Shown here in pieces: positions 1 to 28,585 of a stretch of DNA of 30,685 nucleotides; position 1 is the first letter of the stretch, and each line of letters opens with the position of its first letter. A program made the position numbers and the translations under genes. This stretch comes from Macrostomum lignano (Eukaryota). The stretch lies in NCBI GenBank assembly GCA_002269645.1, contig NIVC01000653.1:1-30685 (forward strand), read 5' to 3'. The notes beneath the pieces were generated by a model. The model was given only the letters and a program-made list of their open reading frames with translations. It was not told the DNA's origin and ran no database searches.

Positions 1-17
1 AAGTAAAATATTTTCAG

Positions 18-4292: not shown

Positions 4293-7200
4293 GTGAGTTT
4301 AATTCTTTTATTGATACGCTGGTATTAGAACAAAAACGAGGCAGTGCATATAGGCTCAGTTTGCAGCACACATGTAGCATGTAGCACGTGTACCTGTGGC
4401 ACCTTTATTTGCTCTCTCGATTCTTCACGAATCCACAGAAAATCGCTCAGCTTTCAAATTATGCTCGCAAATTGAAAACAACTATCGAAACCAAAGATTG
4501 GGCTGGGTGCAGGTGGTAAAGGAACAAGGTTATTATAGGCACCCGTGAATGGAAAGCTGAAGTTGAATTCACAGCAATTTATCGAACTTTTGTGAAAGTG
4601 AAGAGCATATGCTTAACTCAGAACCGCCCCAAGAACACCTTCGAAACAAAATAAGTTTTATTAGTTCAAAATAGCTAGCTAGTAAATTTACAAATTCAGA
4701 AACAGTTTCGCAACCAATGCTTACTATGCATGCATTTGCCACCCATTGCAGTCGAAATTGAGGGTTTCCGAAAAAAACTTCTCGAAGTGGAAGTCCGAGA
4801 ATGTAAAATTAAAGAACTCGTCGATACGGAATTTTGTTTGAACCGACTGCATCTTGCGCGATTCCCAGAGCTGCAACCGTTTCTGAATCATTTGGAAACT
4901 GCAGTGCTGCCGAAAATACATCGAATCAACCAAAGCAGCACCTTTGAATCAATATTCGCAGAAGTGGCTGGGTGCAAATTCAGAAGTGGAGGCGAAATCA
5001 AGCTGCCAATATCCAAGCTCATCCCTTGCCTTTTAGAAGCGATCGATGAATGGGAGGCCAAAATTGAACGGCTAAAATCTGAAGAAGCTACGTGGGAGGC
5101 TGCACAGTTTCTCAAATCGCTTTTTGATCGTGAGGAAGAGCTGGTCAAGGAGCTCAGCTACCGTGCTACTGAGGGTGAGCCATGGGTCGAAAAGTTGGCA
5201 GAAAAGCTGAATCGAGCACAAAAGATTCTAAGGTTTTCAACTGCTGCTGCGGCTGTCCAGAAATCGATGGAGAAGCTAAAGATTCCCTGTAAAGATGACA
5301 TTCTAGTGAGGGTTCAGAAAACGGCCAGTGGAATAGAATCAGAAGCTTTGGCAAAAGTCAATACTGATGACATTGATGAGTTTATTTTTCTAAAAGAGTT
5401 TGCCGAGTCACCAGTTTTTGAACAGTTAATGGCTGCAGTGTCTAGCAGTTCTGAACTGATTGAATGGCTGCCCCAAAACATTCAAAATGGTCCACAGCTG
5501 AAAACTTTCCAGGATCTAGCCATGATATATCTAGGAGACTCGGGCGACCTGGAGCAAAAGAAGATTGAGGTTTTGGTCCAAGTGGTAAACGACTTTCAAG
5601 AAATTATCTACGGAATTGAAACTTTAGTCTCAAATGAAGAAGGAGAGTCACGGAATTCCTTGAACTTTGCCGACCTGTGATGGAAAGGCTGCAGAAAGAA
5701 CCCAAGCGAATTGAAGATTTGACCAAGACGGCTAACCAGCTCAAGTGGATCAAAATAATCAAAGAGAATCAGGGCTCCGTAGAGAGGCCCACGCTGGAGA
5801 AAATCGAAGAGATCTTCAAAAGTGGCAGCTTTCAAATCGGCTGTTTAGTGGAAAACACGGATCACTTTCTGCTCACAACTACCAAGGAAAGCAAGGCTGA
5901 TGACTCTCCCAAAACCCAAAGTAGGGCCGAGTTCACGCTTGCAGATGTCAAAGACTTACAGTCCAAGCTGATGCTCATTGCAGGCAGCGCTTACGAAAAC
6001 AAGCTCTTGCTAGACAGCTTCGTGAAACTAACGGAAGGAATTCTTCGATTGGTTGAGGTTTACAAAGACTTTCGTGCTCACTGCTGCTTGCTCTGCGAAC
6101 AGATCGACATCGTAGTGGATTTAGGCAGTGCAAAAGCTGCTAAGGACCGCTCGACAGAAGCGGGAATAGAAAAAGTAAAAAAGGACCACAACATAAATAT
6201 TGAGCTGCGATACTGCAAGCCCCACAAGTCGATCGGGTGTCATTACAGTGACATAAATGAGGGGCTCACACAACTGTCTAACGTATTTCATTCGTGCTTG
6301 GTAAAATGGAAGGAGGTAATTACTTCTTCTAGAACAAATCGTGACCTTCATGAAATTAATTTTTTTACGCTGAAACAATTGAAATTCTTGCAAAATGAAC
6401 TGGCAAAATTTTTTACCTCTGCAGCACAGAGCCAAGTTGATGATCGAGTGCTCCACCTCCTGTCATACATATGTCCGGCGTGTACTCCGAAAGAAATTTG
6501 TAAAGCAGTTGATTTCGTGGTCATAAAAAAGGCTGGTGGGGATTCTGATGCGAATGAGGAAAATAGCGGGCATAAAGCAGCCGTCAGTTTATTGACAGAT
6601 GAAGGATACAATGAGGAAGTTATCGACAAGACGCTGAAAATCTTTTTAGAAACTTTACTGTCGAAGAAGATAATTGGTCCCAAAACCTTATTGAGCTTGC
6701 TGAAAAGGTTGAAAGGACATCCGTCGTGCAAGCCGAGGAGAGTTCAAGAAAGGACTGGAGTACAGCTGACCATGAACTTTCCGCTGCCGAAGTTGGCGGC
6801 CTTCCCGTTCATGAAGCCTTCGAAAAGTTGTGGGAGATTTACCAAAGAAGCATTGACAAGTCTCACAAGGATTTCCTCAGTTTCCACGATTTATCGATGG
6901 TGCTGAGACGCCTATCCGAAAATGAAAAAAGCCCAATTTCTAAGAGAAAACTAAAGCCTGAATTTCAAAAGCTTTTTTCATGTAGTGAGCCAATAACATT
7001 CGTAATTAACTACAAGGACCAACTGTTAGCAACATTGGATTTGTTCCGCTCAGCATACGATAGTCTTCCTCAGCTGGAGGAAGTTCTGGTGTGCTCTGAC
7101 CAAACTACAGAAGAGGATGTGTCGGTGTTTATGCACCGATCCGTGCTGGATCAGAACAGCCAGGCTCTGTATGTGATTATGGGGGCTGAGCAGCTATCCT

Positions 7201-10200
7201 ATCAGAATTCTGTCTTCGCTGAGGATATTTTTAGCCGGCTGCTGGATCTGGTGGAAGGACGAACGAAAGCAAAGATTTTCGCATTGATGGCCGATGATCA
7301 ACAGCGAAACTTTCCGTTCTGCAGCATCCTCGCTTCCTTCATTCAGGATTATCCAATAATTCCAAATGAGAAAGACATTCGCGATTGGACAGCTAAATTT
7401 CTAAGAGAACAGACACCTGAAGAAAGTAGTTTTGTCTGGGTGACATCATCCCACCAGGCTTCAGGAATGGGTAAATCATTGATGTGCTCGCAAATCGCTA
7501 AGAAGAGAGCACCTGATCAAGACCCAGCCATCTTTAGTTGCAATGACACCCATCTGGATGCGGAAAAGCTGCATGAATTCCTTAGCAGCCCGCTGAACGG
7601 GGGCTCAGCCGTCTTTCACATCGACATCGCACGAGAGGTTCAGACAGGTTTTGATGTGTGCATCACCCAGATTGCGATTCTGGGGGGAATTTCCAGCTCT
7701 GCTGGTTTTATCTGGCGACGTGGATTTAGCCAGCGTTTGCTTCTTCTTGAGCACTCTAAAAACCTCCACTTTAATACAGACTTCCGAGTGCTGAACTTTT
7801 TGCCATGTATTCAGTGCAGATCACCTTCCGAAATTCTCGAAGCCATCGCTGATGGTAAAAGTGACAATGCTTGGGAGCCGCTGTTGAAGGATGAGTTACT
7901 TACGTCGGATTCCATCCGAAAACCTGTTAAATACTTACTTAATAAAAAGGATCGTCGAACGGTACAGCTCTCTGCCAAAGACGTTGTGAAGCTGCTTGTC
8001 GAAAATTGTGGGATCGAAAATCCATCCTGGCAGGAACTACAAGTTTTCAGCAGATTTTTTTGCCGACAAATTTCCGACATGGAGAAATCTCCGTATTGTT
8101 CAGAAATTGCTGGTTCCGAGATTCAGGGATTCCAGGAATTTGTGTTGAAATTCATGCTTATAATGTCAAAGGACTTCGCTACACGCTCGCTTAGCATCTC
8201 CGATGAAAGTGGAGGAAGTCAGATATCAGATGGAAAATTCACGGACAGTCCTGAAAAAGAAGACCTGCAAAATTTTCAATTGAGGCGCCGCTGGGAACAG
8301 AATTCTCACCCGTATCTACTTTTTAACGAAGATGGAGCGACGTTTACTTTTGTAGGATTCACTATAAATCCCGCCGGTGATCTGCTGGATCAGAAGCGCG
8401 CAGTCATTCAAAAAGGAATTATGTCTCAACAGCTGTACAAGGGCCTGCATCGACAAGGGGTTCACCTGGATGAAGCCTTCGATAGCTTGCCTCGTGACGA
8501 GATGATAAATAAAATTCGAATGGTTTTTGGATTTGACAATCGTGCTGCGTCAACCGATCCTGATCTTTCCTATGAGCTTACCACGATAACGCAATGAAAA
8601 TGCTAGCTATTTACATGCGTTTCAGATGCGAGATCCCAGTTGTTCTGATGGGAGAAACTGGCTGTGGCAAAACAAAGCTGGTCGAGTTTCTGTCCAAGCT
8701 CATGCTACCCGAAGGACACCCACCGCTGAGCAATATTAGAATTCTAAAGGTTCATGGAGGTGTTTCTGAAGCAGAAGTGGTAAGTACACTAAGGGAAGCT
8801 GAGAAACTCGCCGCTGAGAACTTTAGTAAATCCAAAAGATCGCCTTACACCATTGTGTTTTTTGATGAGGTAAACACCACAAGTGCAGTTGGACTCATCA
8901 AGGAAGTCATGATAGACGGCCGAGCTCATGGAAAGCCAATCGATTTTTCAAAAGGACTTCGTTGCGTAGCAGCCTGCAATCCTTACCGAAAGCATTCCGA
9001 GGAAACAATTAAGATCCTTGAGAACAGCGGTTTGGGCTACCGAGTTCGGAAGGAGCAAACAAGCGACAGATTTGGCACCGTGCCAATGCGGCACCTCGTT
9101 TATAGAGTCAAACCGCTTCCGTTGTCGTTTCTCCAAGTGCTGTGGGACTTTGGAAATCTCACCGACGAATCTGAAAGAAAGTATATTGACAGAATTATAG
9201 AGTCTCGGAAAACTGCATTCTCTGAACCAGCAGCTTCTGAAAAAGAGCTGAACATTCTTAAGAATGCTATAGCAGCGTCTCAACGGTTCATGCGAACTTC
9301 TTCCGACGAGGCAAAATTTGTTTCCCTCCGAGATGTGGAAAAGGCGATGAAAATGCTGGAATGGCTCTATCGGAGTGAAATAATTGACACCAACTCAAAA
9401 GAGTCCAAGAAATGCAGCCTTACAAAATTCATTTCAGCGGCAGTGATTAGTCTGGCGGTCTGTTACCACAGCCGTCTACCCAAAAACAGACAGCATGAAT
9501 ACCTGAGGATTATCAAGCAGGTTGCATGTACCGATTCCGTGACAGAAGGAGACATCTCAGACTTTATTTCGGCCGTCCAAAGTAATTTGGTCAGTGATGT
9601 TCAACTACCAGAGTCCATCGCGATGAACGAGGCTCTTAGGGAAAACATTTTCACAATGGTGGTGTGCATATCACTGCGAATTCCTCTTTTCATTGTTGGA
9701 AAACCGGGAAGCTCAAAGTCGCTTGGCAAAGCCATCGTTAAAGAATTAATGCAGGGACAAAATTCGCAGGGCCAGCATTTTAAAAAGCTGCCGAATACAC
9801 AAATGTTGTCTTTCCAATGCTCCCCGTGGTCAACATCTGAAGGCATTATTAGCACATTCACACAAGCTGCAAAGCTTCAAGTGGGCAGAGATGAGAATGA
9901 TTCGCTTCTGTTGTTGTACTCGACGAAATTGGACTGGCTGAAGACAGCCAAAATATGCCACTCAAGGCTCTGCACTCTCTTTTAGAGGAGGGAGTGAGTT
10001 TGAGGCATCAAATGAATTCAGAAGTACATGATCAGCAAGCAAATACTATGACAGGCCAGACACAATATGTCAGAGTTTCCTTTGTTGGTTTATCTAACTG
10101 GGCTCTGGACCCTGCAAAGATGAATCGTGGTCTTTACATCCTTCGAGGCGTGCCAGCACATGATGACCTCATAGAAACGGCAAAGGGAATCTGCAAGGAC

Positions 10201-13200
10201 AAGAAGCAAAACATAGTCTCCTGCTTGGATCTGATTACGAGATTTTACTTCAAAATATGCGATGAAACGTGCAAGCAAGTTGAGTTTTTTGGTCTTCGTG
10301 ACTACTTTTGTCTAGTAAAGCACTTGGTTTTCAAGACGAAAGGCAAAAAAGTTAATAATAGAATAATTTTGGAGTGCCTTTTGAGAAATTTTAGCGGCTT
10401 TAAAGACTTAAACCCCACCACGCTGCTTGATCGCAAACTAGAAAGCGTTGACTTAACGGAGCTACAAGGCTATTCGCCAATTCTTGACTCACTGAGGAAA
10501 TCTGATGATGAACAGCGTTATCTATTATTTATTACGCAGAACATGTCAGGCTTCAAGGTTTTATTAAAACTGTTGGACAGCAAATGTCCGAAGTAGGCAT
10601 TCTCTATGCCAGCAGCTTTCCAAAGGACCAGGAGTACTCCAAGATGTGTACAGACATTAACAAGATTAAGGTTAGCATGGAGCGGGAGGAACTCTAGTTC
10701 TTCTAAACATAGAAAATCTTTACGAGTCACTATATGACGCGCTGAATCAGTACTACGAGTACTGCGGACAAGACAGGTTCGTTGACCTTGGCTTAGGAAC
10801 TCATCGTCTCAAGTGCAAAGTGCACAAGGAGTTCCGGATTATCGTCATTGCGGATCAAAGCACCGTCGAAGAAAAGTTTCCCATTCCCCTGATCAACCGC
10901 TTGGAGAAGCACAAGTTGAGCACAGAGGCAATTTTGAATGATGAGAAACGATATACCATTAGGCAGATCCTAGAATGGGTAGAAAAAATGAAAGCGTCTG
11001 GCGAACAAGGTCTTCAAGATATCTTTGTTGGGTACCACTCTGATGTTGTCCCATCATTAGTTTTCGAGCTGGAGAAAGTTGAGAGTGCGAAGGAAATGTT
11101 GCTGTCTGTTGTGACAGTTGAAAGTTTAGTGCAACTAGACAGGACTGATCTTTCGAATGAAAAAGAAGAGTTGTTGCAGAATCATTGCAGAACAAAAGGA
11201 TTGCTGAGCCTGAGAGCGTTCCTCACAAACTTCGAGTTTAAAAACAAGAAACCACTTTTGCAAGTAACTACCTACGACAGGCTGATGTCAATCAAACAAG
11301 TGAAAGAATTTTCAAGAAACTTTCCAGAAAAACTCGGTTCTTTTGAACACTGCTATTTAAGCAAGTTTGAATCAGAAACACAGTTTTGTGAGCACCTACG
11401 TGTCTTCTTTAAGAATGATAAGCGATGCACTTTGCTGCTCCAATGCGAGGGAGCAAGCTCTAACTATCAAAGCCTTATTTCATGCGTTAAGTACCTTATA
11501 GAGGAGAATATCAAGTCCGGAAAGCAAGGTGAATCCTTGCCTGATTGGAGAGTCATTCTGATTATCAAGCTGCTACGATCGCAAATGGTCCCATTCACCG
11601 GGCTGGAGGGTGGTCTCTGGAATTCAGTGCACATTGAGGAACTAGTATCCTCTAACAGAGTGAATATTCATCATCTTGATGGTCTGCCCATGTCTAAAGT
11701 CGTTTCGAAAAGTAGTGAAATCGAGGAACCTGCATGCATGTCCGAAACGGGCATGTCAGAGAAGCCTGTGAATTTCGGACTCTTGCTTCGCAACTGCCAA
11801 TATGCTGCGCTTAGCCGGCTTAAGGACCCAACAAGCAGCGATAAACGTCTTGGAAACAGGCTCCAGACACTCCAACAAGTGCTAAGTGGTAGGTGTATCT
11901 TCAAATTTTATTTCCGAATTCTTGAGGTTATGGATTTAAACTTTCTCAGTTCAGGCCGAAGTCAAAAAGATTTCCTATAAAATATTTTAGAACCTAAGTT
12001 TCTGTCTAAAGCAAATGACGTCGTCAGTGAGTCCCTGCGGTGGAAGGAGGATTCGTGGCAAGCTACTTTTACGCCAAGCCAGTGGCTCAGTTTCGAGTCG
12101 GCAAAACTGATCAACGTGCGAAACGCAGGAAATCTGACGTGAGTATGACAATTTTTAATCTATCTAAACTTAGTTCGAATCTTAATTATCAATGCAAAAA
12201 ACAATTACAGCGAGAGCGCCTGGAGAACCATTAAACGAGAGGCTTCCCATGCTTTTGCCTGCTTTCTAGCCTTTACCGACAGGGATGGAAACTTGAAAAA
12301 CTACTCTAATGAGCTAAAAGCTCTTTGGTTGGATTTGCTTGGTTGTGCGTTCTTTTGTGACATTGAATTCAAGAGGTCATGTGAAGATAAAATGAGAGCC
12401 CCTGTTGAAAGTGCCGAATTTGAAGTAACAAGCTCAGCAGCAGACAATCACGACTTCGACAGCCAATTTCCTTTTTCATGGGCAGTTCTGGAGCGCATGA
12501 GACGCCTGATGGAGGTAGACCCGGATCGACTGGTAGAACTTTTTGGGGAGTCCGATTTCGGAGAAATTTTAAAAAAGCATGACTTCGATGATGCTTTGCT
12601 ACTTAAATATAGCCAAGACATGCTTAATATGCTTTTACTAGAAACTGACAGCGAGTCGGTGACACAAGTGAGTCGAATCCTCGTACAAAGCCCTGACATT
12701 CAAAAGGATTCATTGCCTAATGCTCTGAGTAGCTGCCTTCTAGTGCTCCAAAGATTCAAGCAACAGGTACAGCTACTGCTGAAGTTGAAGAGCCAGATCA
12801 AGGATCTAACCCTAAATATTGCGGAAGTGCAGCGACTGGAAGACTTGCCGGATGTAAGTTTGCCTTGATGTCAATTTTTAAGAATTTCGACCTGTCTATT
12901 TTCTAATGTTTTATGAGCTGTACGGGAGAACTGTGTGTTTCAATTATTCTACAATTTTAGGTTTTGTTCACCTCTTTTTACAAGCACTTTGAGAAAAACA
13001 AAACTCATCTCAACTCAGCTGAAAATCGAAAATTATGGCAAGCATGGGTTACAGACTCCGATGCGGTGATCTGCCGACTTCTGTTGAAAAACGGAAATGA
13101 AGAAATGCAACTTCAGTGGGACCGCATTCAGTGCGTCTTCATCTTTCTGACGGAAGTCGTGAATGCGTTCGATTCTGAAGCCCACATCGAAGAATCCGAC

Positions 13201-16200
13201 ATCAAGCCAATCCAGTTGTGGAATGTAAGCTTGGGCTTCAAATCAACTCTGATAAAGTAAGGCTTTTGAGAGCAATTCCTAACAAGTAAAAGAGCTGCCA
13301 CTCAATTAATCGCAATTTCAGTCTCTCCAACGAAAGTTAAAGGAGAACTTTCAAAGTCTGGAAGCAATTCGAATCATTGAAGAGTTTGTGGATAAGATGA
13401 ACACATCGCTAACAGAAAAAATCTTAGGGTAAGAGCTTTCTTAGCTTAACTCTAACTGTTTGCGATACGCTGGTAGTAAATGTTCAACTGCTTAAAATTT
13501 CAGGAGCAAGGATTGCAGCAAGTGCAAAAAGCGTTCAGATTTCAAGTTAATATTGCCATGTGCTGATCGGTTGTGTGCTGAATGCGTAGCGGACTGCGAA
13601 GTTTCGGAAAACCATGCTGATAGCAGAAAATGTCCGATCTGCAAGCAAGACTTCGATCCTAAGGCTGTGAGCGGTCCAAAGCAGCAGGTTCTTGTGGACT
13701 TCAAGGCTAGGTGCACTAGATTCATGATGCAAGTCGTGTCCAAGCTCTGCTTCCAAGCAGCTAAGCCCCCAACTGAGGATTTATGTCATCATTTAATTGG
13801 CTTCGTGACAAGAACCTCCAAACAAAATGCTGCTTTCGGGCTCTTCGGTGACGACCGCGACGATTCTCCGGTGTTCAGATCGTTCATCTTACAGAGGCTG
13901 CTTAAATTCCAGCCAAGCCAGGTCGAATCGCTGTTACAGCAACACGTTGATGCTGTCGCTAATTTCAGGGCAGATGCCAGGCATGATTTAGCTAAGATAA
14001 TTGTGAACTGCATGGAAGACGCTCAGATTGTGCGAAGCGAAGCTGAAGCGATGAATGAAGAACAGCAACTGCATCACGCTGTGTCCTTGCTGGCAGAGTC
14101 GACCCTACCAGAAAAGCTCCAGCTGTTGCAGATTCCACACCTACAAAACATCGCTTCACGTAGAGTGGCTTTACGCGTTCTGGCATTCGTATTTTCTCTT
14201 GGAAATCTCGGTGAAGAAACTGTTAATGCACTGGCAAGAGCTCTGGAGCCGCATAAGTGGAGCCGAATTTACTTTTTGCGCTGCCTTTCCATGGAGGTTG
14301 GTGTCTCTGCTGCAATAGGCCTCATCTTTAGAAATACAGTGGTTAAGACAACTCTGGAAGCAGAAATTGGAGGCATGGATGTAGTGCCCGTGCCTGACTT
14401 TCTACTCAGCCACTCTGAGGCGTACAAAGACTCAAAAGAGTATGTTCTCTCAACACTATACGATTCGAAAACTCAGGTAATATAAAATTTATCAAAATGT
14501 TTTAAATAAAATATGACCTTTCAGCATAGTCGTATCCTCAAATGAAAAGTTGATTAGGCGTCAACATTGACCCCATATTGTAAATAATACTAAATGTACT
14601 TTAAGCGCACCCCACCTGCCGCACACGGCCAAAAAGAAAGGAGAACATCGGTTTGCCAGTAGTCGATCCACTTCTGCCCACGTCTGCGCGGTGCCAGCAA
14701 GAAGCAAGGCGTACTGAAGCGGCTCAGCACAATAATAGGCTTCTAGGAATCTCGGGCCAGGCTCGCTGCAGTCGCTGACGTAGCTTCGTATATTAGACTT
14801 CAACATTAAAAGTCCAAATGCATGCACAATCTATGAGTGTAATGCTTGGTTTATCAAAAAGGATTCTCGTGAAAGCGCGCTGAGGATTTGGTTCATTACA
14901 AGTATTCTTGCTCTCGACACAGGGCAGTTGGACGTAAAACAATCGTTATTATGTATAGTGTGATTTCTATCCGGAAAGATTAATAGCTCGTAATAAGCGA
15001 GAATTGATCCAATTAAGCTTCTGCTAATTTCAGGACTCGGTGCTTCCTGACTCGAGCGGAACTATCTTGGTTCTAGCAGCACTGGCATCCACGTATAAAC
15101 TACGACACATGACTGAAGAGAAACCACCGGAATTCGAAAACTGCATCGAAAGATTGAAGTCTGAATTGTCTGCTCCACAAAAGGTAACGAAAAATGAGAA
15201 AATTGTACAGTATATTGCTGGTATGATTAGCAACACAGTTAAACGTTTCATCAGTCTAAAATGATGCTTAACATATGTTCAAATGAGTTGAAATGGACGC
15301 TTTAATTTTCCTTTTGCTACTTAGCTACATGAGTGCAACACGCTCTTTGGAAAAATCAAGTAGAAAATTTAGTAGGCAGCTGTATACACTAACAGATCCA
15401 GGGGGTCCAAATCATCAATATATTTCTTCAAATTCGTGATATTGCAAGTCCAGAAAGCTGTGCTCTGTTAATTTTTTTCATATTAACGCAAACTTAAGAA
15501 TGCTGGCGGATCCAGGGGGTCAAGGGGGTCGGCTGACGGGATCAGAACCCCCCCGGGAAAATCCTGGATCCACCATTGACTGTATAGTATCGCTGAAATC
15601 GTTAAAAATCGAATACTCTGCCTTTTAAGTGTTTTGATATGGCATTAAATTATTTTCCTGCGTCAAAAGAGCAGCGTATTTATACTTGTATTGTGCTTAA
15701 GTAGCTAATTCAATCTGTAGGTACCAAGTTCTCTTTGGTACGCGTATAATAAAATATAGCAAGGGACAATCGAAAACCCCTTTGTTATAACAAAGGCTAG
15801 ATGTATTGCAATACTTCAATGTAGTTCGCAGTGTTAAAACGCTCATTTTCCTAAAACTAGTTTTATAGCTATCAGAAGAATGTAAAATATTTAAACATTT
15901 GTTGTTGAATTTTAGAAACTGTACAACCAGTTGGCTTACCTGACGCAATCGCCATTGCCGGACCACAATGCTGCTCTGCTGTGCATTCGCTTGGCCTATG
16001 TGTTACACGCCAATTCCGCAAATGAAAGCTCCGCCTTTCGAAAGTTTTTGAAGGACCTGAAGTCATTAGCCGACAACTCGTATCTTCCTGCGATGATGCA
16101 CGATGAAATCTGGGAGCGGCTGTTAGAAATGATTAACTGTCCAATTACAACGAAGGATAAAGAGGGTTTTCTTTGTGATGAAAACTTCAAGATGTACTGT

Positions 16201-18776
16201 GAGTAAACACCAAAGCTATAGTAGGTGATGTACGATAGGAACAAACTACCTTCGTTACCAAAAACAAATTGTCAAAGAGTATATTCTGCATCCTTCTCAG
16301 ACCCAGATTATCTTGAGTGCCATCATTTTTAGTAAGTCGGATTCGTTTCTGTTGGCAAGCAGGTGAAGTGACGGTCCAAAAGCCCGCGTCTTGAAACTCA
16401 CCCTAAAGCTTGGTGGGAATTATCATAATACCAGATGTAGCGAAATAGCTGCAACCCAAGTTTCTTACTTTCTTAATACCTGTTGTAGCTACATTTCATT
16501 CATTGTCACATCAGGTGCCAGAGTGGAAACGAATATCAAAAAGTTACTTAGGTTGCTTAGGTTAGGAGGAGGCAGTGGCGAAGATACGAGCTGGTCCTGG
16601 GCGCATGTTAGAGCCCTCTCAGGGCATGCAGGGTCGAGTAACTCAACTCCCCTCGTTTAACAACAGCAGCAACTAGCTGATGTGCTGACGAGCTACGAGA
16701 TCACAAGTATTGCAAGAGCCATCCGTAATTTTCTTTCTAGGTTGCCCAAACGGCCATCCGTACGTCTTGGGAGAAGTAAGCAGCCAAAAAATATTTTAAC
16801 GAACTAAGGCCGTTTATTTTATCCGTTTTTTTTTATGCTAAAGTTGTCAAATTCAATCATTATTTTAATTTTCAGTGCACACAAGGATGGGTGAAGTACA
16901 AGTGTCACGAATGCGCTGCTGACATTGGGGGTCAGAAGCATAAAATAGCTGCAAACAACACCGAATACAAATGCAAGACAAAGATGGGCTTCTCCCCGCC
17001 ATCTATGAAGGAAGGTCAGCAGCCTCTGCGCAAGCTCACGCCAGCCAGTGCAGCTCTGATCCGGCTGCTGCAGCATCTGGCCATGTTGGTTTCTCCAGAC
17101 TCCAGACGCAAACTCCAGACTCCAGACGCAAACTGCTACTTGAGAGGGTTCGTCGACGACTTGAAATTGTTCAGCCAAGTAACCGGCAGAAGTGAGGAGG
17201 AGACATATCATATCCTCCACTTACTACTTAAGCAATTGGAGTCGGCCAAAAGCGAATCCGTTTCTTTTGATCTGAAAACTGACAAAAGCCGGAGAGAATT
17301 TGAGGACCAAATCGATAGGGAGTTGATACAGCCAATTATGGGAAACCTCAGCGACCTTCTTCAGAAATCTAACAAAGAAATTGCGCAGCAAACATCGGAA
17401 ATTTTGCAAATCATCCATGGTACTTCGAAAATGGAAGAAGAGGAGGAGGCTTCGCTCTGGAAATGTCACAGGCGGATAACCGTAAAGCACGCTGAGTATG
17501 CTTTCCAGGAACTAAGTACCGAACTCTCTGAACGATACAGACTGACTGGAACGGTTATTAATTGGCTTCCTGTATTGCGTCACGTCGGATCCTTGCCTCG
17601 ACTGATGAGACTGACAAAAGAATTGACGACATGTTACAACTACAAAATTACCTCTAAAGACGCCAGCTCAAGGACTTTTCAAGAAGCCTGGCACGACCGT
17701 AGTGACGAGTGCAAGCTGCAGGATGTGTATGAATTTGGACGAATTTGGGATGAACTCAAGCACCGACTGAAGCTGGCGCGGTTTGAAGACTTACCATATC
17801 CGGTTGTAAAGGGTGAAGTTTCCGCCTGTGACCTGCCATTGGCAGCTCTGCTACCGCATTCGAGTGAATGGGGGCGTTGCATCGTGGCCCTAGTGCAGCT
17901 GCTTGTTGATGCTCAAAATGCGGTGATTGATGCCAGCGCTATCAAAACGGAGAAAATATCACTGGACGATATAGATCAGGCTGCTGTGATACCACGGGAT
18001 CTAGAAGCGGGCCTCCTGCCGATACTACTGGCTAATAGTAGCTACTCGCTCAAAGATGCAGCCTGTGTTGAATATGATTTCAAGAGTCTCGAGTGCCAAC
18101 TGGTGGACTTCTTGGCGCGCGGCCGTTGCCGAATAGCTCCTCTCTTATCACCAATCGTCTACAAGGACGAGGTACATCTGATGCAGCTCTTCAAGCGTCT
18201 GGAGCGAACTGTACCACAAAACTCAGCTCCGTCAAGCGTCCACTGACTCAGGCGCTAAGCTCAAATCTGCCTCACGAGTTAAGAGACATCACTGAACTCT
18301 TGGATGACTCGTTGCCTGCAGCCATGCGTTTCCTAATCTCGCTGGCGCCGAAGGACACACAAGAGTTGCTGCATGCCTTCATGACTGAAAGGCTTGCAAT
18401 GCCAGGTCTGCCCACACCACAGCTGCAGCGCAGCGTCACATTAGCGGATACTAAGCTGCTCTGGATGTTCCTGGACCATCTGCGTTGCCGCTGTCTAATC
18501 CGAAGTGACTTGAACCCGTTTGAAGACTGTGGTGAGGTGATCGAGCTGCCAATGGAGTTGCCGAAAGAGCTGAAGAATCGGCGCTCAATTCTTATGGAGA
18601 AGCTGCATGCCTTCATCAGGCTGGAGCTGAGCAGTGGGCCAGCAATTTACGAGGGCATGGAGCTGCAGGAAGTGTGTGACATCTTTCCCGAGTACGATGA
18701 ATTCAGCGCTTTCGACGGGAGCTTCTTGTGCGAGCACGCGGTTGCTGTCTGGACCGCTCTCAATCGCATGGAGTGA
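1494..18776 (+). CDS. RNF213: RNF213/mysterin-like giant AAA+ ATPase / E3 ubiquitin ligase (multi-exon, 5'-incomplete, frameshifted in this sequence)
   Basis: RNF213-diagnostic motifs occur in the correct order: SGMGKS, YELTT[DN]AMKMLAIYMRFRCEIPVVLMGETGCGKT, IVFFDEVN, CVAACNPYR, IPLFIVGKPGSSKSL, VVVLDEIGLAE, VSFVGLSNWALDPAKMNRG, FPKDQEY, NLYESLYDALNQYY, DLGLGTHR, FPIPLINRLEKH, DRDGNL, RING, LPAMMHD, RZ finger, C-terminal ...AVAVWTALNRME*. Phase-compatible GT-AG exons: 1494-1707, 1930-2277, 2388-2495, 3218-3349, 3641-3833, 3988-4292, 4700-11888, 11991-12138, 12211-12853, 12961-13224, 13322-13428, 13504-14476, 15034-15183, 15916-16198, 16741-16775, 16876-18776. Confidence 0.93.
4700..11888 (+). 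CDS. RNF213: 7.2-kb single exon encoding the stalk and AAA+ ring; interrupted by six -1 frameshifts
   Basis: Acceptor aattcag|AAA at 4699/4700 and donor G|gtaggt at 11888/11889. ORFs 4730-5680, 5677-6906, 6726-8597, 8594-9985, 9955-10596 and 10820-11980 abut or overlap, stepping -1 each time, with no AT-rich intron between them. Confidence 0.85.
8651..9000 (+). other. catalytic AAA+ module: Walker A GETGCGKT (8651-8674), Walker B IVFFDE, sensor-1 ACNPYR
   Basis: Motifs read directly in ORF 8594-9985 and match the first catalytically complete AAA unit of RNF213. Confidence 0.9.
9698..10130 (+). other. second catalytic AAA+ module: Walker A GKPGSSKS (9698-9721), Walker B VVVLDEIG (after frameshift), SNW / AKMNR motifs
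   Basis: Walker B is visible only in the -1 frame from ~9901 (TTC GCT TCT GTT GTT GTA CTC GAC GAA ATT GGA). Confidence 0.88.
13514..13642 (+). other. RING finger variant C-x2-C-x11-C-x-D-x2-C-x2-C-x15-C-x2-C
   Basis: The exon from 13504 reads (G)SKDCSKCKKRSDFKLILPCADRLCAECVADCEVSENHADSRKCPIC. The fourth ligand position is GAT (Asp) at 13565-13567. Confidence 0.85.
15380..15586. mobile_element. small MITE-like insertion in an RNF213-like intron
   Basis: A 13-bp inverted repeat tggcggatccagg (15504-15516) / cctggatccacca (15563-15575) has 1 mismatch. A second gatccagggggtc copy lies at 15395-15407. A 7-bp direct repeat ctgtata at 15380-15386 and 15580-15586 flanks the whole unit. Confidence 0.45.
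16198..16941 (+). other. RZ finger (RNF213/ZNFX1-type E3 domain) split across three exons
   Basis: The spliced read is ...KMY C|CPNGHPYVLGE|CTQGWVKYKCHECAADIGGQKH. Introns 16199-16740 (gtgagt...ttctag) and 16776-16875 (gtaagc...tttcag) have matching phases. Confidence 0.9.
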
Positions 18777-18841
18777 TGCCGATTGTGCTTTGGTTTTTAG
18801 ATTGACAAAACAATTGAATCCCCGTTCCCCATATGATTCCC

Positions 18842-18894
18842 TATACTCACTAACTAGCTATACTCACTATACTTACTATACTCACTATACTCAC
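18842..18894 (+). repeat. 9-bp minisatellite (TATACTCAC) in the putative 3' UTR
   Basis: Four tandem units at 18859-18894 (one variant, TATACTTAC) plus one detached unit at 18842-18850. Confidence 0.85.
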
Positions 18895-19166
18895 TAATGA
18901 GTGATGAGGCAAATCATGCTGGAATTAGTCGGAAAACTATTACTGAAAAATTCGAATGCAAGTAGATATGGCTAATACCTCGGAAAGTAATTTGTTTTTT
19001 AAAACTGTCGGTCTGCTTTTTCTCGCACAGACAAGTTTCGTATTGAAATTCAGAAGCACAAAACAAGCAAAGCAAGCCTCATTGCTATGATCAGTTATTT
19101 GGTGATGTGTTTGCATGGTCACAAATTGTAGTTTTACTGTTCCATACAATATTTAATCCCACTTTT

Positions 19167-21311: not shown

Positions 21312-22575
21312 CACTCAGCAACATTGAAAAGTTTCCACCCTCGCGCCAGCCATGTATATTTCGAGTTTCAAAACTGGTTTTTGTCGCCAGACTTGTGCCA
21401 TAGACGATTGTTGATTTCGTCAACACGCACTTGGGCCATAGACAAAAACTTGGGTCATAAACGCCTGACAAGTCGAAGGAAACAGTCACATGGAGCAGAC
21501 AGCAGCAGCGTACAGGAGTCTAAAATCCACGTTCGCAACCAAACGCAAATGGTTCGCCAAATGACCGACCTGGAACGAGCGCGCGCCATTGGCATGCTGG
21601 ACGCTGGATGTCCATCCGAGCTGTTGCTCGCCAAATTGGGCGGTCGCACACAGCAATCCGCAAACTGCAAATCAAGTGCAGAGAAACGGGCAGCGTGGCG
21701 CACGCCACGCGTGGCCGGCGGCTTAATATGCGCAGTACAACTAGGAGGGCGGACCGGCGATTGCTGCGAATGGTGAACCCCACATTGCCAGCCACCCTGC
21801 TACGGCTGATGTGGGCTGAAAGAAGCAGGCGAGGGAATATTCTGAACGCCCAAACAATCCGACGACGATTGCGGGAGTCGGGGCTGCGATCCCGTAAGAT
21901 GCGCAAACGGCCACGCCTGACCCCAACCCATGTGGCCAGCCGGGAACAATGGGCAATGCAAAGGGTCCACTGGAGGCAGCAGCAGTGGCGGCGAGTGATT
22001 TTCACAGATGAGAGCCGCTTTCGATTGTTCCGTGCCGACGGCCGCATTCGCGTGTGGCGCCAGCCGCGCCAGGAGATGCTCCCGCAGCACGTGCAAAACT
22101 CTGAGAGCCAGTCAGCTTCTATTCACGCGTGGGCAGACATCACAATGCACGCGAAGACGGAGCTCGTGTTCCTGGATGCGACTGTGACTGCCGAGTCATA
22201 CGCCAACCTTCTACAGACGCCCCTGCTGCCCTTCATTGATGCTTCACGTGGTGGCGTGGGGAACAGCGTCCTCCAAGACGACAACGCCCCACCGCATCGC
22301 GCAGCCGCTGTGGCGCATCTGAAGGAGCTGCTGCACCTGCGAAACTTGCGCTGGCCGTCCCAATCACCGGACATGAATCCCATAGAGTACGTTTGGGATT
22401 ACCTGAAGCGCTCGATTCGGCGCGACAATCCGCCGCAAAACGTTGCCCAACTGCGCGAATCACTGTCTACTGCATGGAAACAACTACCGCAAGATTTTCT
22501 GCGACGCCTGGTTCTGGGATGCCCCGGAGAGTGAGCGCTCTGCTGCACGCACGTGGCTGCTATACGCGTTACTGA
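21312..22575 (+). mobile_element. Tc1-family DNA transposon; probable left end TA|CACTCAGCAAC, right TIR not found
   Basis: A TA|CACT-type Tc1 start at 21310-21312 lies ~240 bp upstream of the transposase. No reverse-complement copy was seen downstream. Confidence 0.75.
21549..22575 (+). CDS. Tc1 DD34E transposase (~342 aa after repairing two -1 frameshifts)
   Basis: MVRQMTDLERARAIGMLDAG/MSIRAVARQIG (HTH), VIFTDESRF, VLQDDNAPPHRA, WPSQSPDMNPIEYVW (34 residues between D and E), C-terminal MPRRVSALLHARGCYTRY*. Frameshifts at ~21607 and ~22518. Confidence 0.92.
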
Positions 22576-23420
22576 CCCTGTTCTGGGCAAGTTGTCACCC
22601 AGATTTCGAATAGATTTGCTGTTTGATTAAGAATGGGGTTTTATATAGACAAATTCTTTGTCCGTCTCCAGTAGCATTTCCTTCTACTTTGGCTGTCTTT
22701 GCTTCGACATCATAAACCAGCTATTCAACTTTTTTTAAGTACGCGCCCCGTAGTATTGACAGGCATATCGCCAATTCCGTTAACAGTTTAACACTCACGG
22801 AACAATACACTGTGTCATCATTATTATTATGATGCATAATGATTCCTACATCAGTGGAGAACATACTCGAAGTGAATAAATTGATTTCATGTTACTAGCT
22901 ACTAGAATACACATTTCACATATTTCACATACGAGAGTTAATATCGAGATATGCTCGAATGCCAAAAAAAGTACAAATAATACTTTTAAAAGTACACGTG
23001 GATGTGATTTGATAAGTCATATAAAAAAGTAGCGACGTACGAGCTACTCAAAAGTACCATTTACAAAGATGGCGAAGTGCATTGTTACAAAATGGGTTCC
23101 AATAAGACAGATTACACTGCAAAGTTAGCTAATGCATTTAAAATTATGTTGATAAACTGAACCATATTGGATGTGGATAACTTGTTATTCTAAGTCAGAA
23201 AGAGACGCCTATTTTACATTTTTTACGAATAGTTGTGAACTGGATGCACACGAAGTCTAGGAATAATGATTTTTTAAATATAGTAGTAGCAACCAAGGCT
23301 GGCTTAAGAACACAGGATCCTGGGTATTATACATGGAAGTGAATCACAAGTCAAGAGGATTAAACACTAGAGCAAATGCGCCCAGTGGATTACATTATTT
23401 GATTAGGAAGCCTCGACTCC

Positions 23421-24923
23421 TTAAATCTGCGAAGACCTGTACCCACTGGCTTGCGCCTTTCTGACCTGGGAGACCGCTGGCTGCTGCTGCGGTAGCTGCC
23501 GCTGCTGCTGTTGATGCGGCCGGGACTGCGACTGCGTTTGGTGCTCGAACTCGCGATCTTCTCTGAGTGGCTGCCGCATCAACGAAAGCGGATCCCGCTC
23601 GTAGCCGGGCGGCGGCGACCTCTGCGGAGGCGGCGTCTCAATCGGCGGCTGCTGCCAGCTCGGCAAGTGTCGCGACTCCCCGTACGGGCGTCCCTGCCGA
23701 GCAGAGTCGTCAACGGTTGCCTTGGCCTGAAAATCCTGTCCGCTGGCCGATGCGGATATCTGCTTTCTGGTTGCGCCGCCAGAAAAGCCGGAATGATAGC
23801 TGCGCGAGGACTGCACACCGCCGACTGCGCCAGCCGGTGGAGCGTCCGAGAAGCCTGTGGAGAAATTTGCCGCTGCCGCCGAGGCAAATCCAGCCCGCTT
23901 TGCTCGATCGATTCGCACAGGAGCCTCCTCGAACGGAGGACCGCTTGGAGGCGCGTGTTTAACGAAGCTCGCTGTTGTGGGGACATCCTGATGTGCCTGT
24001 ACAGCTTGTTGACTGCGCCTTGGGTGGTCGTCTCGCTGTTGAACACCATATTGAGCAGAGGAAGCGTTTCTAGCCTGGTCTGTTGTTGGTCGGGGATCGA
24101 ACTGTGCAGACGGTCCTCGTCTAACTTGATCGCCTGGCGGCGGCAAATTGTACCGGCCAGCGGGACCTTGACGCGTGCGATCAGCTGGTGGTTGAGCACC
24201 GTGCTGAGCATAGGGACTGAGTTTGTTGTTTAGCGGTGACGGCTGCTGCGATGGAGCTCTACCTGTGGAGATGGTTGCTACTTGCGGCTGCGCTGGAGAC
24301 CTTGCAGCTTCAGCCTCGTCACTCAGGAAACCGAGGTTGTAAAATGCGCCCTCTCGATAGGACGGCATGGGCTGAAGCCGCGACGAAGACATCTGTGATG
24401 GTTGAGGCCGCTGCTCTTGAGGCACTCGTCGCTGTTGCTGTTGTACCGGGTCTCGCGAAGGAAGAGGCAGCACCGGTGGGCGCGGTCGACTACCAAAAGC
24501 TGCAGCAGTTGCCGACTGCGAAGGGAGCTCCTGATACCGGCTAGATGGTTGAATGCCCAGCTGAGCGAATCGTTCGGCCTTGGCCGCGTCCAGGCCAGAC
24601 TTCACCCGATAGAAATGAATGCCGAATACGATGAGCAGTGCTCCGCCGATTATCAGCAAGGCCACGCCGAGGTAAGTCACCGCCAGAATCCCTGCCGGCT
24701 TCGTTGCTTGTGAGCCGCCGCTGGAGCCGACGGCGCTGCTGTCAGCGGAGACGCCGGCGAACACGAAGATGATGCCCAGAGAAAGGCAGGTCAGGCTTGC
24801 ACCGAATTCAATCCAGCAGACTCGAGTCTCTTTGACGCAAATTGGCTCGTGTGTTCGCTCCCGGGCCTCCTGCTGCTGCTGCTGCTGCTGCAGTCTGGAG
24901 TGCATCCCGCGGGTGGGATTCAT
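23421..24923 (-). CDS. intronless uncharacterised protein (~500 aa): poly-Q N-terminus, two TM helices, long P/Q/S-rich disordered tail
   Basis: The ORF is unbroken with a likely start MNPTRG at 24923. Hydrophobic segments are VCWIEFGASLTCLSLGIIFVFAGV and ILAVTYLGVALLIIGGALLIVFGIHFY. It ends ...YRSSQI*. No family recognised. Confidence 0.7.
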   Translation of the reverse strand: MNPTRGMHSRLQQQQQQQEARERTHEPICVKETRVCWIEFGASLTCLSLGIIFVFAGVSADSSAVGSSGGSQATKPAGILAVTYLGVALLIIGGALLIVFGIHFYRVKSGLDAAKAERFAQLGIQPSSRYQELPSQSATAAAFGSRPRPPVLPLPSRDPVQQQQRRVPQEQRPQPSQMSSSRLQPMPSYREGAFYNLGFLSDEAEAARSPAQPQVATISTGRAPSQQPSPLNNKLSPYAQHGAQPPADRTRQGPAGRYNLPPPGDQVRRGPSAQFDPRPTTDQARNASSAQYGVQQRDDHPRRSQQAVQAHQDVPTTASFVKHAPPSGPPFEEAPVRIDRAKRAGFASAAAANFSTGFSDAPPAGAVGGVQSSRSYHSGFSGGATRKQISASASGQDFQAKATVDDSARQGRPYGESRHLPSWQQPPIETPPPQRSPPPGYERDPLSLMRQPLREDREFEHQTQSQSRPHQQQQRQLPQQQPAVSQVRKAQASGYRSSQI

Positions 24924-25635
24924 GGGAAGAAGCTGCACTGCGGGAGCGAGTTTTAACGACTGTACAGTGGGGGACGCCGATGCAAAAAGCAAAAAGGATG
25001 ACGGGGGTCGAGATTTTCTTCTCCACAGCGCACTGCTGGAATGCTGGGGATGGGTTGGGATCAGGGAGACTTTCGGAAGCTCGTCTACAAGCGTTATTCT
25101 CTTTCCTTTCTGGCTGGGGAGCTGCGAGTTGAGGAATCCGATAGGACGAAGAAGGTTGGGTAAGGAAAAGATGGGGAGAGACGATAAGGAGCAGTCAGTG
25201 CTGCGAGGTCTTGTCTCTCGGTACCTCTTCTGTCTGTTTTGTACGCAAGAGAAAGACCGCCTCACTTCTCTTCTGGTCTGGTCTGGCCTGGCAATATAGC
25301 GGTAGGGCTTGGGGCCGCTGTGCGGAGGGAGGGAATGTAGAAGTGAAGAGGGTTAGCGACATTCAAGGCGAGCACTGCACTGGGGCGGGCGGGTGGGACA
25401 GAGCTGGGCGGCTAAACACCGTCACCCCAAACTTGCTCCCATGGGTGGAGGCTACTCTTTCCGTCTCATTATTGAGTCTCACGGCAATGTACGCTTGCCA
25501 ACTCAACGTGTCTCCTTCTATACTATTGTACTCAGGCTTTTTACGAAGCTTAATTATTCTGACCGCGCTTCACCGCTCTTGAGAAAGTGGCCAGGTAGGG
25601 GCTGTCAAATGGTTGGTCACAACTTAAGAAATGGT

Positions 25636-25726: not shown

Positions 25727-25842
25727 GAGCTTGCTGCATGTTGTTGTGAAAGCTGCGCTACGAGTTACAAAGTGGGGTCAAGTATTTTTCCAAGGCTACG
25801 CTTAATTATTTTTAGCTCTGGCTAAATGGCTAAAGTATGTAA

Positions 25843-27745
25843 GCCGTCGCGCTCCTGGCTGAGCACCGCACCCAAGGCCACAGCACTGCTGTCACAGCTG
25901 ATGACGATAGGCCGGCTGAAGTCGGGCAGCTGGAGCACCGGGGCCTGGGTCAGCGCGTCCTTCAACTTTTTCAGCACCGCAGCATGCTCTGACGTCCACA
26001 CGAAGCCGCCGCCCGCGCCTTTCTGAGCCAGGTGATGCAGCGGTTTGGCAATATCAGAGAAGTTTGGCACGAACCTGCGGTAGAAGCTGAGCATGCCGAT
26101 GATGCGTCGAACATCCTCAGACTGCGGCTCCGGCATCCGCCTGATCGCCTCGACCTTCTCCGCGGCAGGTGCGATGCCGCTCTCAGAGACTTGGTGACCC
26201 AGGTACGTGACGCTCCGGTAGGCAAAGAAGCTCTTGCCTGGGTTCAGCTTCAGCTTGGCAGACCGCAGTCGATGCAGCACCTTGGACAGTGACTGAACGT
26301 GGCTCTCAAAGTCCCTGTTGAAGATGATCAGGTCATCAATGTACGCGATGACCTCCTCCCAGCTCAGGCCGGTCATGATGAGCTCCATCATTCGCTGGTA
26401 CGTCGCAGGCGCGTTGCACATGCCGAATCCCATTTTGCGGAATTGCATCAGGCCGCTCGGAGTGTAGAACGCTGTCAACGGCCGATCCTCCTCTCTGACC
26501 TCCACCTGAAGGAAGCCTTGCGCATGTCGATCGTAGAGAACCATGAGCAGCCAGCCAAGGAGTCGAGCGCTTGGTGCAAATGCGGCAGCGGGTGGGCGTC
26601 CTTCACTGTGAGGTTGTTCAGCGCCCGCCAGTCTACACAGACTCGGATGTCATTATTCTTCTTTCTGACGATTATCAGGTTGCTCGCCCACGGGCTGGTG
26701 GAGGGCTCGATGACGCCGTGTTGTCGCATCTGCTCCAGCTTCTCGTCCACTTGCCTCCTGAAGGCGTGAGGCACCCGCCGAGGCCGTTGGCGAATCGGGC
26801 GAGCGCCGTCGTCCAGCTCAATCTTGTGCTGCGCTGCGCTGCTCGTACCAACGTCGAACTCATGGACTGAGACCACGTCGGCAAATGCCCTCAGCAGCAT
26901 TGCTAGACGGTTGCTGTCCTCCTCCAGCAGCTCCGGATTGATGTTGAACTGGTCTGCGGGGCCTCGCCACTCGTGCACGTCCTCGTCCTCGTCGATAACC
27001 TCCGCGCTCTCGAAGGTGCCGATGCTCTGGTTGGAGAACAGCGTGACCGGGCTGCAGCTGAGGTTGCACACCTGAACCGGAATCTTGCCGCTCTCTGAAG
27101 ACACCGCGAACACGCGGCCGGGCAGCACTCCGATTCTGTCGATGAACTCCTGTGACGGCTCGAAGATGCCATGTGCCTGCTTGGTCTCGGTCGTCACGTC
27201 CACCACTTTAACTGACCTTGGCGTACCACGACGGCGCCCTGAACTCTGGCGATGATCACTGTGGGTACCAAGCAACAGGACAGCGGGCCATCTTGCTTGG
27301 AATCGCAGTTACTGAACGGAACCGCCTCACCATCGAATGCGACTGTCTTGGCACCCTGGTCCATGCTGAACTGCGATCTGGCCGCCTTGCTCACGAAATC
27401 CATCCCCAGGATGAAGTTTGGGCGAATCCCTCTGACCACCAGCACGTCCATTTGTCTGCGCAGCTGATGACTGAGTCGCGCCGTAATGCTCACGCTTCCT
27501 AACAGCTCGAGAACGGAGCCGTCCACGGACACAGGCCTGACATCTGCCGGCTTCAGCTCGCAGCGACCGTCCAGCTCTCTCAAAGCAACGTCGCTGATCA
27601 GCGAGGTCTGCGCTCCGGTGTCCAGCAGCCAGCGGCACGGCTTGCCGTTTGCCTCTCCAGGTATAAAAATAGCATGAAGCACGGGATTGCTCCTTGGGGT
27701 TGGTGTGGGTCCCGCACCCGTTGCACCAACCCTTAAAAGTTTCCC
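25843..27745 (-). pseudogene. pol: gypsy pol: aspartic protease, linker, reverse transcriptase, truncated RNase H
   Basis: WLLDTGAQTSLIS; PIRQRPRRVP; IEPSTSPWASNLIIVRKK; VCVDWRALN; DAHPLP; FGMCNAPATYQR; AYIDDLIIF; YLGHQVSESG. Further -1 shifts occur at ~27200-27275 and ~26517. Confidence 0.9.
27697..27745 (-). promoter_or_regulatory. programmed -1 ribosomal frameshift signal (gag->pol)
   Basis: The slippery heptamer G GGA AAC (27745-27739) is in the gag frame, followed by a 6-nt spacer and a stem GGGTTGGTG/CACCAACCC with an inner GGGT/ACCC stem. The -1 frame leads into the protease. Confidence 0.85.
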
Positions 27746-28551: not shown

Positions 28552-28573
28552 GAGTGCACTTGCACTGGGTTCT

Positions 28574-28584: not shown

Positions 28585-28585
28585 A

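Follow-up and report, generated by a model that had tools for sequence, protein, structure and literature searches.

The human and mouse RNF213 (mysterin) structures (PDB 8S24, 9G08, 6TAX, and 7OIK) comprise a stalk, a ring of six AAA units, an E3 ubiquitin ligase module with a RING finger, an RZ-type zinc finger, and a C-terminal domain (CTD), in this order. In the RZ finger of human RNF213, the metal is held by C4505, H4509, C4525, and C4528, while C4516 is the proposed nucleophile that accepts ubiquitin and H4537 the proposed general base; the RZ domain is described as flexible and partly unresolved (PMC11549300). ZNFX1 likewise possesses an RZ finger, complete with catalytic Cys and general-base His (bioRxiv 10.1101/2025.09.05.674436), but there the finger is combined with a superfamily 1 (SF1) helicase core and fingers of the NFX1 type, and the CTD of RNF213 is missing. 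Here, we describe a gene of the flatworm Macrostomum lignano that features the elements of RNF213 in the same order. It is located on the plus strand of contig NIVC01000653.1, positions 1 to 30,685; this whole stretch of 30,685 nucleotides (nt) is referred to as the window, and coordinates are window positions unless another contig is named. The exons of this intron-containing gene were sought with stop-to-stop open reading frames (ORFs) and homolog-guided splice searches. Residue numbers of human RNF213 are chain numbers minus 40, an assumed construct offset that reproduces the published numbers. Segment 16198 to 16941 of the gene was confirmed to encode a complete RZ-type zinc finger, which is predicted from its alignments to be catalytic.

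Because of two introns, the finger is encoded in three parts, namely, a split codon, a 35-nt micro-exon, and codons 1 to 22 of the last exon. The public model that covers this region is the GenBank hypothetical protein BOX15_Mlig002339g1 of M. lignano (764 amino acids). The parts of the finger and its metal-binding and catalytic positions are as follows.

16198, plus strand: last base of the upstream exon (15916 to 16198) and base 1 of the split Cys codon T/GT; exon end in BOX15_Mlig002339g1, with the same phase-1 intron in a paralog
16741 to 16775, plus strand: 35-nt micro-exon encoding (C)CPNGHPYVLGE; public model, paralog exon, and motif
16743 to 16745, plus strand: putative zinc ligand Cys, equivalent to human C4505
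16755 to 16757, plus strand: putative zinc ligand His, equivalent to human H4509
16876 to 16941, plus strand: start of the last exon, CTQGWVKYKCHECAADIGGQKH (first 22 codons, rest of the finger); sequence, profile, and alignments
16876 to 16878, plus strand: putative nucleophile Cys, first codon of the last exon, equivalent to human C4516
16903 to 16905, plus strand: putative zinc ligand Cys, equivalent to human C4525
16912 to 16914, plus strand: putative zinc ligand Cys, equivalent to human C4528
16939 to 16941, plus strand: putative general-base His, equivalent to human H4537

When the three pieces (16198, 16741 to 16775, and 16876 to 16941) were joined across their GT-AG introns, they gave CCPNGHPYVLGECTQGWVKYKCHECAADIGGQKH, exactly the intact finger that an initial annotation of the window had derived from the same three exons. 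The spliced translation is free of stops over the 562 codons of the part tested, and the spliced peptide matches the Pfam family ZnF_RZ-type (PF20173) with 56.1 bits at a cut-off of 27 (E = 2.8e-15), covering profile positions 8 to 53 of 54; the last exon alone reaches 24.8 bits and thus stays under the cut-off. HMMER pairs yCCPNGHPYVLGECTQGWVKYKCHECAADIGGQKHK with YTCPNGHPCSVGECGRPMEQSICIDCHAPIGGIDHK of human RNF213. In the HMMER alignments with human RNF213 chains, the six Cys and His residues are in register with C4505, H4509, C4516, C4525, C4528, and H4537, so the human spacing proposed by the initial annotation, which had counted from the second Cys (16743 to 16745), was borne out, and the codon it had designated for the catalytic Cys (16876 to 16878) does align on C4516. 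The first Cys of the "CC" pair, encoded by the split codon (16198 plus 16741 to 16742), lies opposite a nonconserved position, T4504 in the human protein. The same six residues are also in register with seven other RNF213 homologs; in this eight-sequence alignment, which includes human, mollusc, nemertean, and flatworm proteins, the residues Y, C, N, G, H, P, C, C, C, I, G, G, and H are invariant. The motif C-x3-H-x6-C-x8-C-x2-C-x8-H was found in 82 of 156 collected relatives, many of them fragments. From the catalytic Cys onward the flatworm finger reads C-T-Q-G, whereas most homologs have C-G-R-P. The AlphaFold2 model of BOX15_Mlig002339g1, computed from a 22-sequence alignment (mean predicted local distance difference test [pLDDT] value of 75.7), features four short strands at residues 117 to 151. 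The pLDDT values of the catalytic-Cys loop are below 50, which is in line with the flexibility described for the mammalian RZ domain.

The upstream exon ends with ...AAG ATG TAC T/gtgagt (donor GTGAGT at 16199), the micro-exon reads ttctag/GT TGC CCA AAC GGC CAT CCG TAC GTC TTG GGA GAA/gtaagc, and the last exon opens with ttttcag/TGC ACA... at 16876. These splice junctions are correct on four independent lines of evidence, i.e., the public model, its RNA-seq origin, a paralog, and a scan of candidate exons. Mapped onto the window, BOX15_Mlig002339g1 has exons at 15109 to 15183, 15916 to 16198, 16741 to 16775, and 16876 onward; it matches the spliced C-terminal 562 amino acids with 100% identity and uses the 35-nt micro-exon with the same junctions. 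The annotation of M. lignano was built from a genome-guided RNA-seq assembly (StringTie and TACO, supplemented with a de novo transcriptome; ORF calling by TransDecoder) (PMC5730564), so that the junctions of this protein are transcript derived; the RNA-seq verification suggested by the initial annotation has in effect already been done. At the locus of the paralog PAA78550.1 on GenBank contig NIVC01000679.1, an exon ending with ...GCC TAT G/gtgagc is followed by a 35-nt exon (22751 to 22785 of that contig; ag/CT TGC CCC AAC GGC CAC CCG TAC TAC ATT GCC AAT/gtaagt) with the same intron phases, and the next exon opens with the codon for the catalytic Cys (cccag/TGT GGC). Finally, of 54 AG- and GT-bounded, frame-preserving, stop-free candidate internal exons within 16199 to 16875, only 16741 to 16775 completes the finger motif and matches both the RNA-seq-guided model and the paralog exon. 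Two longer candidates with the same donor, 16693 to 16775 and 16708 to 16775, also contain CPNGHPYVLGE and were rejected, as neither the public model nor the paralog supports them. The 542-nt intron preceding the micro-exon holds a 97-codon open frame on the plus strand (16367 to 16657).

The finger belongs to an RNF213-type gene with AAA ring, RING, RZ finger, and CTD, as the initial annotation had surmised; its product is a giant protein whose ring of AAA+ units is of the dynein-like kind. Window positions 1 to 18776 of the plus strand contain most of this gene, which, judged from its sequence, is very probably functional, with frameshifts that would be single-base assembly errors. Its parts are listed below, followed by the evidence for them.

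1 to 4751, plus strand: further upstream exons for the N-arm or stalk; the gene starts before the window
4752 to 11960, plus strand: giant exon of approximately 7.2 kb for the stalk and the six-unit AAA ring; alignments and motifs, with six 1-nt deletions
8651 to 8674, plus strand: AAA3 Walker A, GETGCGKT; motif
8852 to 8875, plus strand: AAA3 Walker B, IVFFDEVN; motif
9698 to 9721, plus strand: AAA4 Walker A, GKPGSSKS; motif
9910 to 9945, plus strand: AAA4 Walker B, VVVLDEIGLAED; motif
12174 to 12853, 12961 to 13224, and 13322 to 13428, plus strand: hinge and E3-shell exons; homolog guided
13504 to 14476, plus strand: exon encoding the RING finger and a portion of the E3 module; ORF 13496 to 14482 and alignment
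15034 to 15183, plus strand: exon upstream of the RZ region; paralog homology extends 5' of the internal ATG at 15109 with which BOX15_Mlig002339g1 starts
15916 to 16198, plus strand: helical segment leading into the RZ finger; public model
16876 to 18776, plus strand: last exon with the second half of the RZ finger and the RNF213 CTD, ending with the stop codon TGA at 18774 to 18776; alignment, with a 1-nt deletion at 18239

The conceptual product has 3893 amino acids and is encoded by 4752 to 11960, 12174 to 12853, 12961 to 13224, 13322 to 13428, 13504 to 14476, 15034 to 15183, 15916 to 16198, 16741 to 16775, and 16876 to 18776. Its translation was begun at 4679, the start of the open frame; an acceptor was found at 4750 to 4751, and the first 24 residues, which precede it, are probably intronic. 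Its alignment with human RNF213 consists of four collinear stretches corresponding to the stalk, the AAA ring, the RING/E3 module, and the RZ finger plus CTD, with a total of 1141 bits over approximately 3700 residues. The AAA-ring stretch accounts for 949 bits and pairs residues 769 to 2328 of the product with residues 1461 to 3083 of 9jw1_A (human RNF213, construct numbering); the six-unit ring was assigned from this whole-ring alignment. ORF 8576 to 9982 shows Pfam matches to AAA and AAA_5 and matches the human and mouse RNF213 structures with an E value of 1.5e-112. GETGCGKT/IVFFDEVN and GKPGSSKS/VVVLDEIGLAED represent the Walker A/B pairs that RNF213 has in its two catalytically competent AAA units (PMC11549300); the parts shared with the human protein are GETGCGKT/FFDEVN and GKPGSSKS/VLDEIGLAED. 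The junction between 11960 and 12174 is the least certain of the model, the corresponding intron of the paralog lying approximately 14 codons further on. The RING finger at 13514 to 13642 has the form C-x2-C-x11-C-x-D-x2-C-x2-C-x15-C-x2-C, with Asp at the usual His position. In the alignment of ORF 13496 to 14482 with the human RING/E3 module (E = 2.9e-11), seven of eight metal ligands are retained; the RING finger scores 22.3 bits against Pfam zf-C3HC4_3, which is under the cut-off of 27. At the C-terminal end, residues 115 to 685 of BOX15_Mlig002339g1 (approximately 570 residues) align with the human RZ finger and CTD with E values of 3.2e-33 to 3.6e-33. On 9g08_A, a 5247-residue construct (E = 3.6e-33), the alignment spans 4539 to 5143, corresponding to approximately 4499 to 5103 of the native protein if the offset is 40. 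A Foldseek search of the PDB with the AlphaFold2 model gave nine significant matches, all of them RNF213, with E values from 2e-21 (9G08) to 1.5e-13; the identity over RZ finger and CTD is about 21% in this comparison. No Pfam match was obtained for the upstream ORFs 1381 to 1800 and 1930 to 2319. The last coding exon also contains a perfect 20-nt tandem duplication at 17093 to 17134 (2.1 copies of CTCCAGACTCCAGACGCAAA), which is in frame and translated as SPDSRRKLQTPDAN.

Seven 1-nt deletions, at 5641, ~6647, 8584, 9900, ~10584, ~10686, and 18239, break the reading frame of the window copy at sites that leave no room for introns. Six of them are located in the giant exon, and the seventh (18239) lies in the last exon at a position where a second copy of the locus, GenBank contig NIVC01001187.1, has an extra G. 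Six single-base insertions give one unbroken ORF of 2435 codons, and after one-base repairs the whole model of 3893 codons is devoid of nonsense codons. The second copy is 99.8% identical to window positions 5103 to 18896, from which it differs by 19 one-base indels and 11 substitutions. It lacks the frameshifts at 5641, 8584, 9900, and 18239 and has others of its own, e.g., at 9507 and 14092, where the frame of the window is open; at the three frameshifts common to both copies, a run of T, A, or G is one base short (ATCTTTTTAG, GCAAATG, and GCGGGAGG). From these comparisons, we infer that the frameshifts are assembly errors and not signs of gene decay. An interpretation of the frame changes between the long ORFs as short introns was rejected, as a tblastn comparison with the paralog loses no residues and the second copy shows one-base indels at these sites.

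Alternatively, the locus could be a decaying pseudogene copy of an RNF213-like gene that yields no full-length protein and whose RZ finger is intact by chance of timing. The seven frame-breaking deletions, the redundancy provided by several paralogs in the partly duplicated M. lignano genome, and the fact that GenBank annotates the locus in fragments only are in favor of this explanation, but it appears improbable. The absence of four of the seven lesions from a nearly identical copy that carries different ones is the mutually exclusive pattern expected of sequencing or assembly error, and indels outnumber substitutions, only three of which lie upstream of approximately 18.1 kb. Furthermore, the shared lesions are confined to homopolymer runs, the repaired frame has no nonsense codon, and the 3' part of the gene is covered by RNA-seq-derived transcripts. 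A functional gene interrupted by single-base assembly errors thus remains the preferred interpretation.

A second alternative concerns the micro-exon, which could serve as a regulated switch: transcripts skipping it would be frameshifted and would either encode a ligase devoid of RZ finger and CTD or be degraded, giving conditional control of the E3 activity. Omission of the exon indeed shifts the frame and leads to a stop 15 codons downstream, and the 35-nt length and the intron phases are conserved between paralogs that are only 43% identical. However, there is no evidence for any skipped isoform, the conservation would equally be expected of a constitutive exon, and its acceptor and donor are strong consensus sites, so that such a switch is very unlikely. 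An origin of the finger from a ZNFX1-type protein (SF1 helicase, NFX1 fingers, and RZ) or another unrelated RZ protein, conceivable in that ZNFX1, which is conserved among invertebrates, carries an RZ finger as RNF213 does (PMC11549300; bioRxiv 10.1101/2025.09.05.674436), has next to no probability left: the RNF213 CTD, which is absent from ZNFX1, aligns with approximately 530 residues located downstream of the finger, the alignment with a RING finger and an RNF213-type AAA ring upstream, collinear and on the same strand, refutes it, Pfam scans of eight large upstream ORFs (4679 to 14482) returned AAA-type P-loop and RING matches only and no helicase or NFX1-finger match, and sequence and fold searches of the PDB matched RNF213 only.

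The RNF213-type gene of the window has close company in its own genome. M. lignano possesses at least four divergent RNF213-like paralogs of the same architecture that are 37 to 62% identical, including PAA78550.1 (BOX15_Mlig006834g2, 5368 amino acids), PAA73448.1/PAA78029.1, and UniProt A0A1I8JAF5. PAA78550.1 is annotated at full length and aligns end to end with the 3893-residue product at 43% identity. Both genes share a giant exon (approximately 7.25 kb in the paralog), exons of 264 nt and approximately 108 nt, and the 35-nt RZ micro-exon, whereas the remaining intron positions differ. The RING His is kept in PAA78550.1 but replaced by Asp in the window gene and in A0A1I8JAF5. A HMMER scan with BOX15_Mlig002339g1 retrieved 345 representative clusters at E ≤ 1e-3, of which 96 had E ≤ 1e-10, the M. 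lignano paralogs being closest.

Beyond this species, annotations of RNF213-like genes exist for sponges, cnidarians, molluscs, annelids, nemerteans, echinoderms, and hemichordates. The description of the gene as divergent in the initial annotation does not hold for the AAA3-AAA4 segment, whose ORF reaches 40 to 47% identity to RNF213-annotated proteins from a wide range of invertebrates (a crinoid, mussels, clams, a sea anemone, a tubeworm, a gastropod, acorn worms, and a sponge). Its identity to a protein of the fungus Rhizophagus, labeled only "AAA+ ATPase domain-containing protein," is 33%. Crassostrea gigas rnf213-alpha, Lineus longissimus XP_064634464, Sinanodonta woodiana KAL3881517, and the proteins of Exaiptasia, Amphimedon, and Saccoglossus belong to the same family and have the RZ motif in common with the window gene; identity to these invertebrate relatives is 40 to 47% in AAA3-AAA4 and 23 to 30% in the CTD. 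An RNF213-like protein of S. woodiana (4701 amino acids, filed as "hypothetical protein") can be aligned end to end at 28.8% identity. The window gene differs from these relatives in being of platyhelminth origin and in having a fragmentary GenBank entry named "hypothetical protein." Its supposedly undescribed status applies in a narrow sense only. Our literature search found no paper joining RNF213 and "flatworm," a broader one yielded only papers in which RNF213 does not occur, and no study on the evolution of RNF213 in metazoans was found, but RNF213 annotations are widespread among invertebrates, and such genes occur, as transcript-level correlations, in immune-challenge and symbiosis transcriptomics (PMC7430831, PMC11299980). 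In a clam, RNF213-annotated transcripts shift both up and down after challenge with pathogen-associated molecular patterns (PMC7430831).

The roles that can be proposed for the individual elements follow mammalian RNF213 (PMC11549300; bioRxiv 10.1101/2025.09.05.674436). One Zn2+ ion would be bound by the Cys at 16743 to 16745, the His at 16755 to 16757, and the Cys residues at 16903 to 16905 and 16912 to 16914, thereby holding together a small β-sandwich. A ubiquitin-charged E2 enzyme would dock on the E3 shell and the CTD, and its ubiquitin would be passed by transthiolation to the RZ Cys at 16876 to 16878, with the His at 16939 to 16941 possibly acting as general base for transfer onto the substrate. 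The ligase would be activated when its AAA core binds ATP. Every sequence element for a scheme of the mammalian type is present and collinear, while the scheme itself is carried over from the mammalian enzyme. Ubiquitylation of pathogens and lipopolysaccharide, coat formation, and induction by infection are known only for the latter (PMC11549300). By analogy, an innate-immune, pathogen-coating role in the flatworm is plausible. Flatworms are not known to have an interferon system, so that the regulation must differ from that of mammalian RNF213.

Several points weigh against the interpretation of the locus as a functional RNF213 gene operating in the mammalian manner. The N-terminal portion of approximately 1100 residues, corresponding to the human CBM20 region, is located outside the window. 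In the RING finger, LPCADRLC stands in place of human LPCDHVHC, i.e., Asp replaces the conserved His4014, and H4014N is a Moyamoya allele in human RNF213; the RING finger is, on the other hand, dispensable for pathogen ubiquitylation in mammals (PMC11549300). The global TM-score of the AlphaFold2 model against RNF213 is low (0.3), presumably because domain orientations differ. At the three shared frameshifts a real lesion is possible, because the window and GenBank assemblies were built from the same PacBio reads (PMC5730564). Finally, the predictions for catalysis, E2 choice, ATP control, and substrate have to bridge a C-terminal identity of approximately 20 to 30%.

Outside the gene, the comparison with NIVC01001187.1 revealed a change in the type of divergence at approximately 18.1 kb: upstream, the two copies differ nearly exclusively by indels (three substitutions), whereas downstream they are 2 to 4% (locally 9%) divergent. 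In addition, the window contains an extra block of 2.95 kb (25838 to 28790) that is missing from the second copy. This pattern suggests a switch to the other haplotype or to a duplicated copy, with a polymorphic retroelement insertion. Largely coinciding with the extra block, in a stretch of 59 to 60% G+C, are remnants of a long terminal repeat retrotransposon-like gag-pol region in several frames of the minus strand. The remaining features of the window are the following.

18841 to 18896: 9-nt microsatellite CTATACTCA, about six copies, approximately 65 nt past the stop codon
19000 to 20000: stretch of 28% G+C
21524 to 22531, plus strand: ORF of 336 amino acids for a Tc1/mariner-type transposase; HTH_Tnp_Tc3_2, E = 1.6e-10; DDE_3, E = 6.5e-14
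23424 to 25352, minus strand: low-complexity, Q-rich ORF of 643 codons, no Pfam match
25825 to 28641, minus strand: the gag-pol remnants, with a CCHC zinc knuckle, RVT_1 (E = 5e-21), and RT_RNaseH_2
~29660 to 30450, minus strand: pieces of a hot-dog thioesterase-like gene in different frames; the stitched peptide NVYCKVFGGFLMRKALE...FRAPVELGSLLFLSAQV scores 22.3 bits against Pfam 4HBT (cut-off, 20.6)

The public databases hold most of the gene in pieces. GenBank assembly Mlig_3_7 contains a model of 1771 amino acids ending at approximately 6168 and no gene between there and 15109 (1067 to 10001 of NIVC01001187.1), i.e., in the part encoding the AAA ring and the RING finger. BOX15_Mlig002339g1, its 1771-residue upstream neighbor, and the intervening 9 kb without annotation together make up a single RNF213-type gene. 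The finger itself is not hidden, as the initial annotation had it: BOX15_Mlig002339g1 already includes the junctions, carries PF20173, and is named "RZ-type domain-containing" in UniProt. The related expectation that annotation would miss the catalytic domain applies to UniProt A0A1I8J9L4 and to the finger without the micro-exon, which falls under the Pfam threshold, but not to BOX15_Mlig002339g1. A0A1I8J9L4 (2819 amino acids, "RING-type domain-containing protein") skirts the frameshifts, and its finger is mis-spliced, with the micro-exon region in the wrong frame (...ERLLPKRPS/CTQGWVKY...), leaving only the second half of the RZ finger. The single-base assembly errors would account for the fragmented GenBank models as well as for the detours and the mis-spliced finger of A0A1I8J9L4.

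The gene is thus a flatworm member of a known family that is undescribed in the literature and whose RZ domain is already recognized in databases. As a discovery the finding is ordinary, since the domain, the family, its presence in invertebrates, and the exon structure were all known or in GenBank/UniProt. It has modest practical value in that fragmented M. lignano "hypothetical proteins" are joined into one gene and the mis-splicing of A0A1I8J9L4 is exposed. A genetically tractable flatworm with at least four RNF213 paralogs could be used to study the prevertebrate role of the family. It is a speculative and rather doubtful idea that the small flatworm family constitutes an interferon-independent, cell-autonomous system for coating pathogens or symbionts, in which the two paralogs lacking the RING His would have the RZ finger, encoded across the conserved 35-nt micro-exon, as their only active site. 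If it is true, the ancestral function of RNF213 could be modeled in vivo in M. lignano, which is transparent and amenable to transgenesis.

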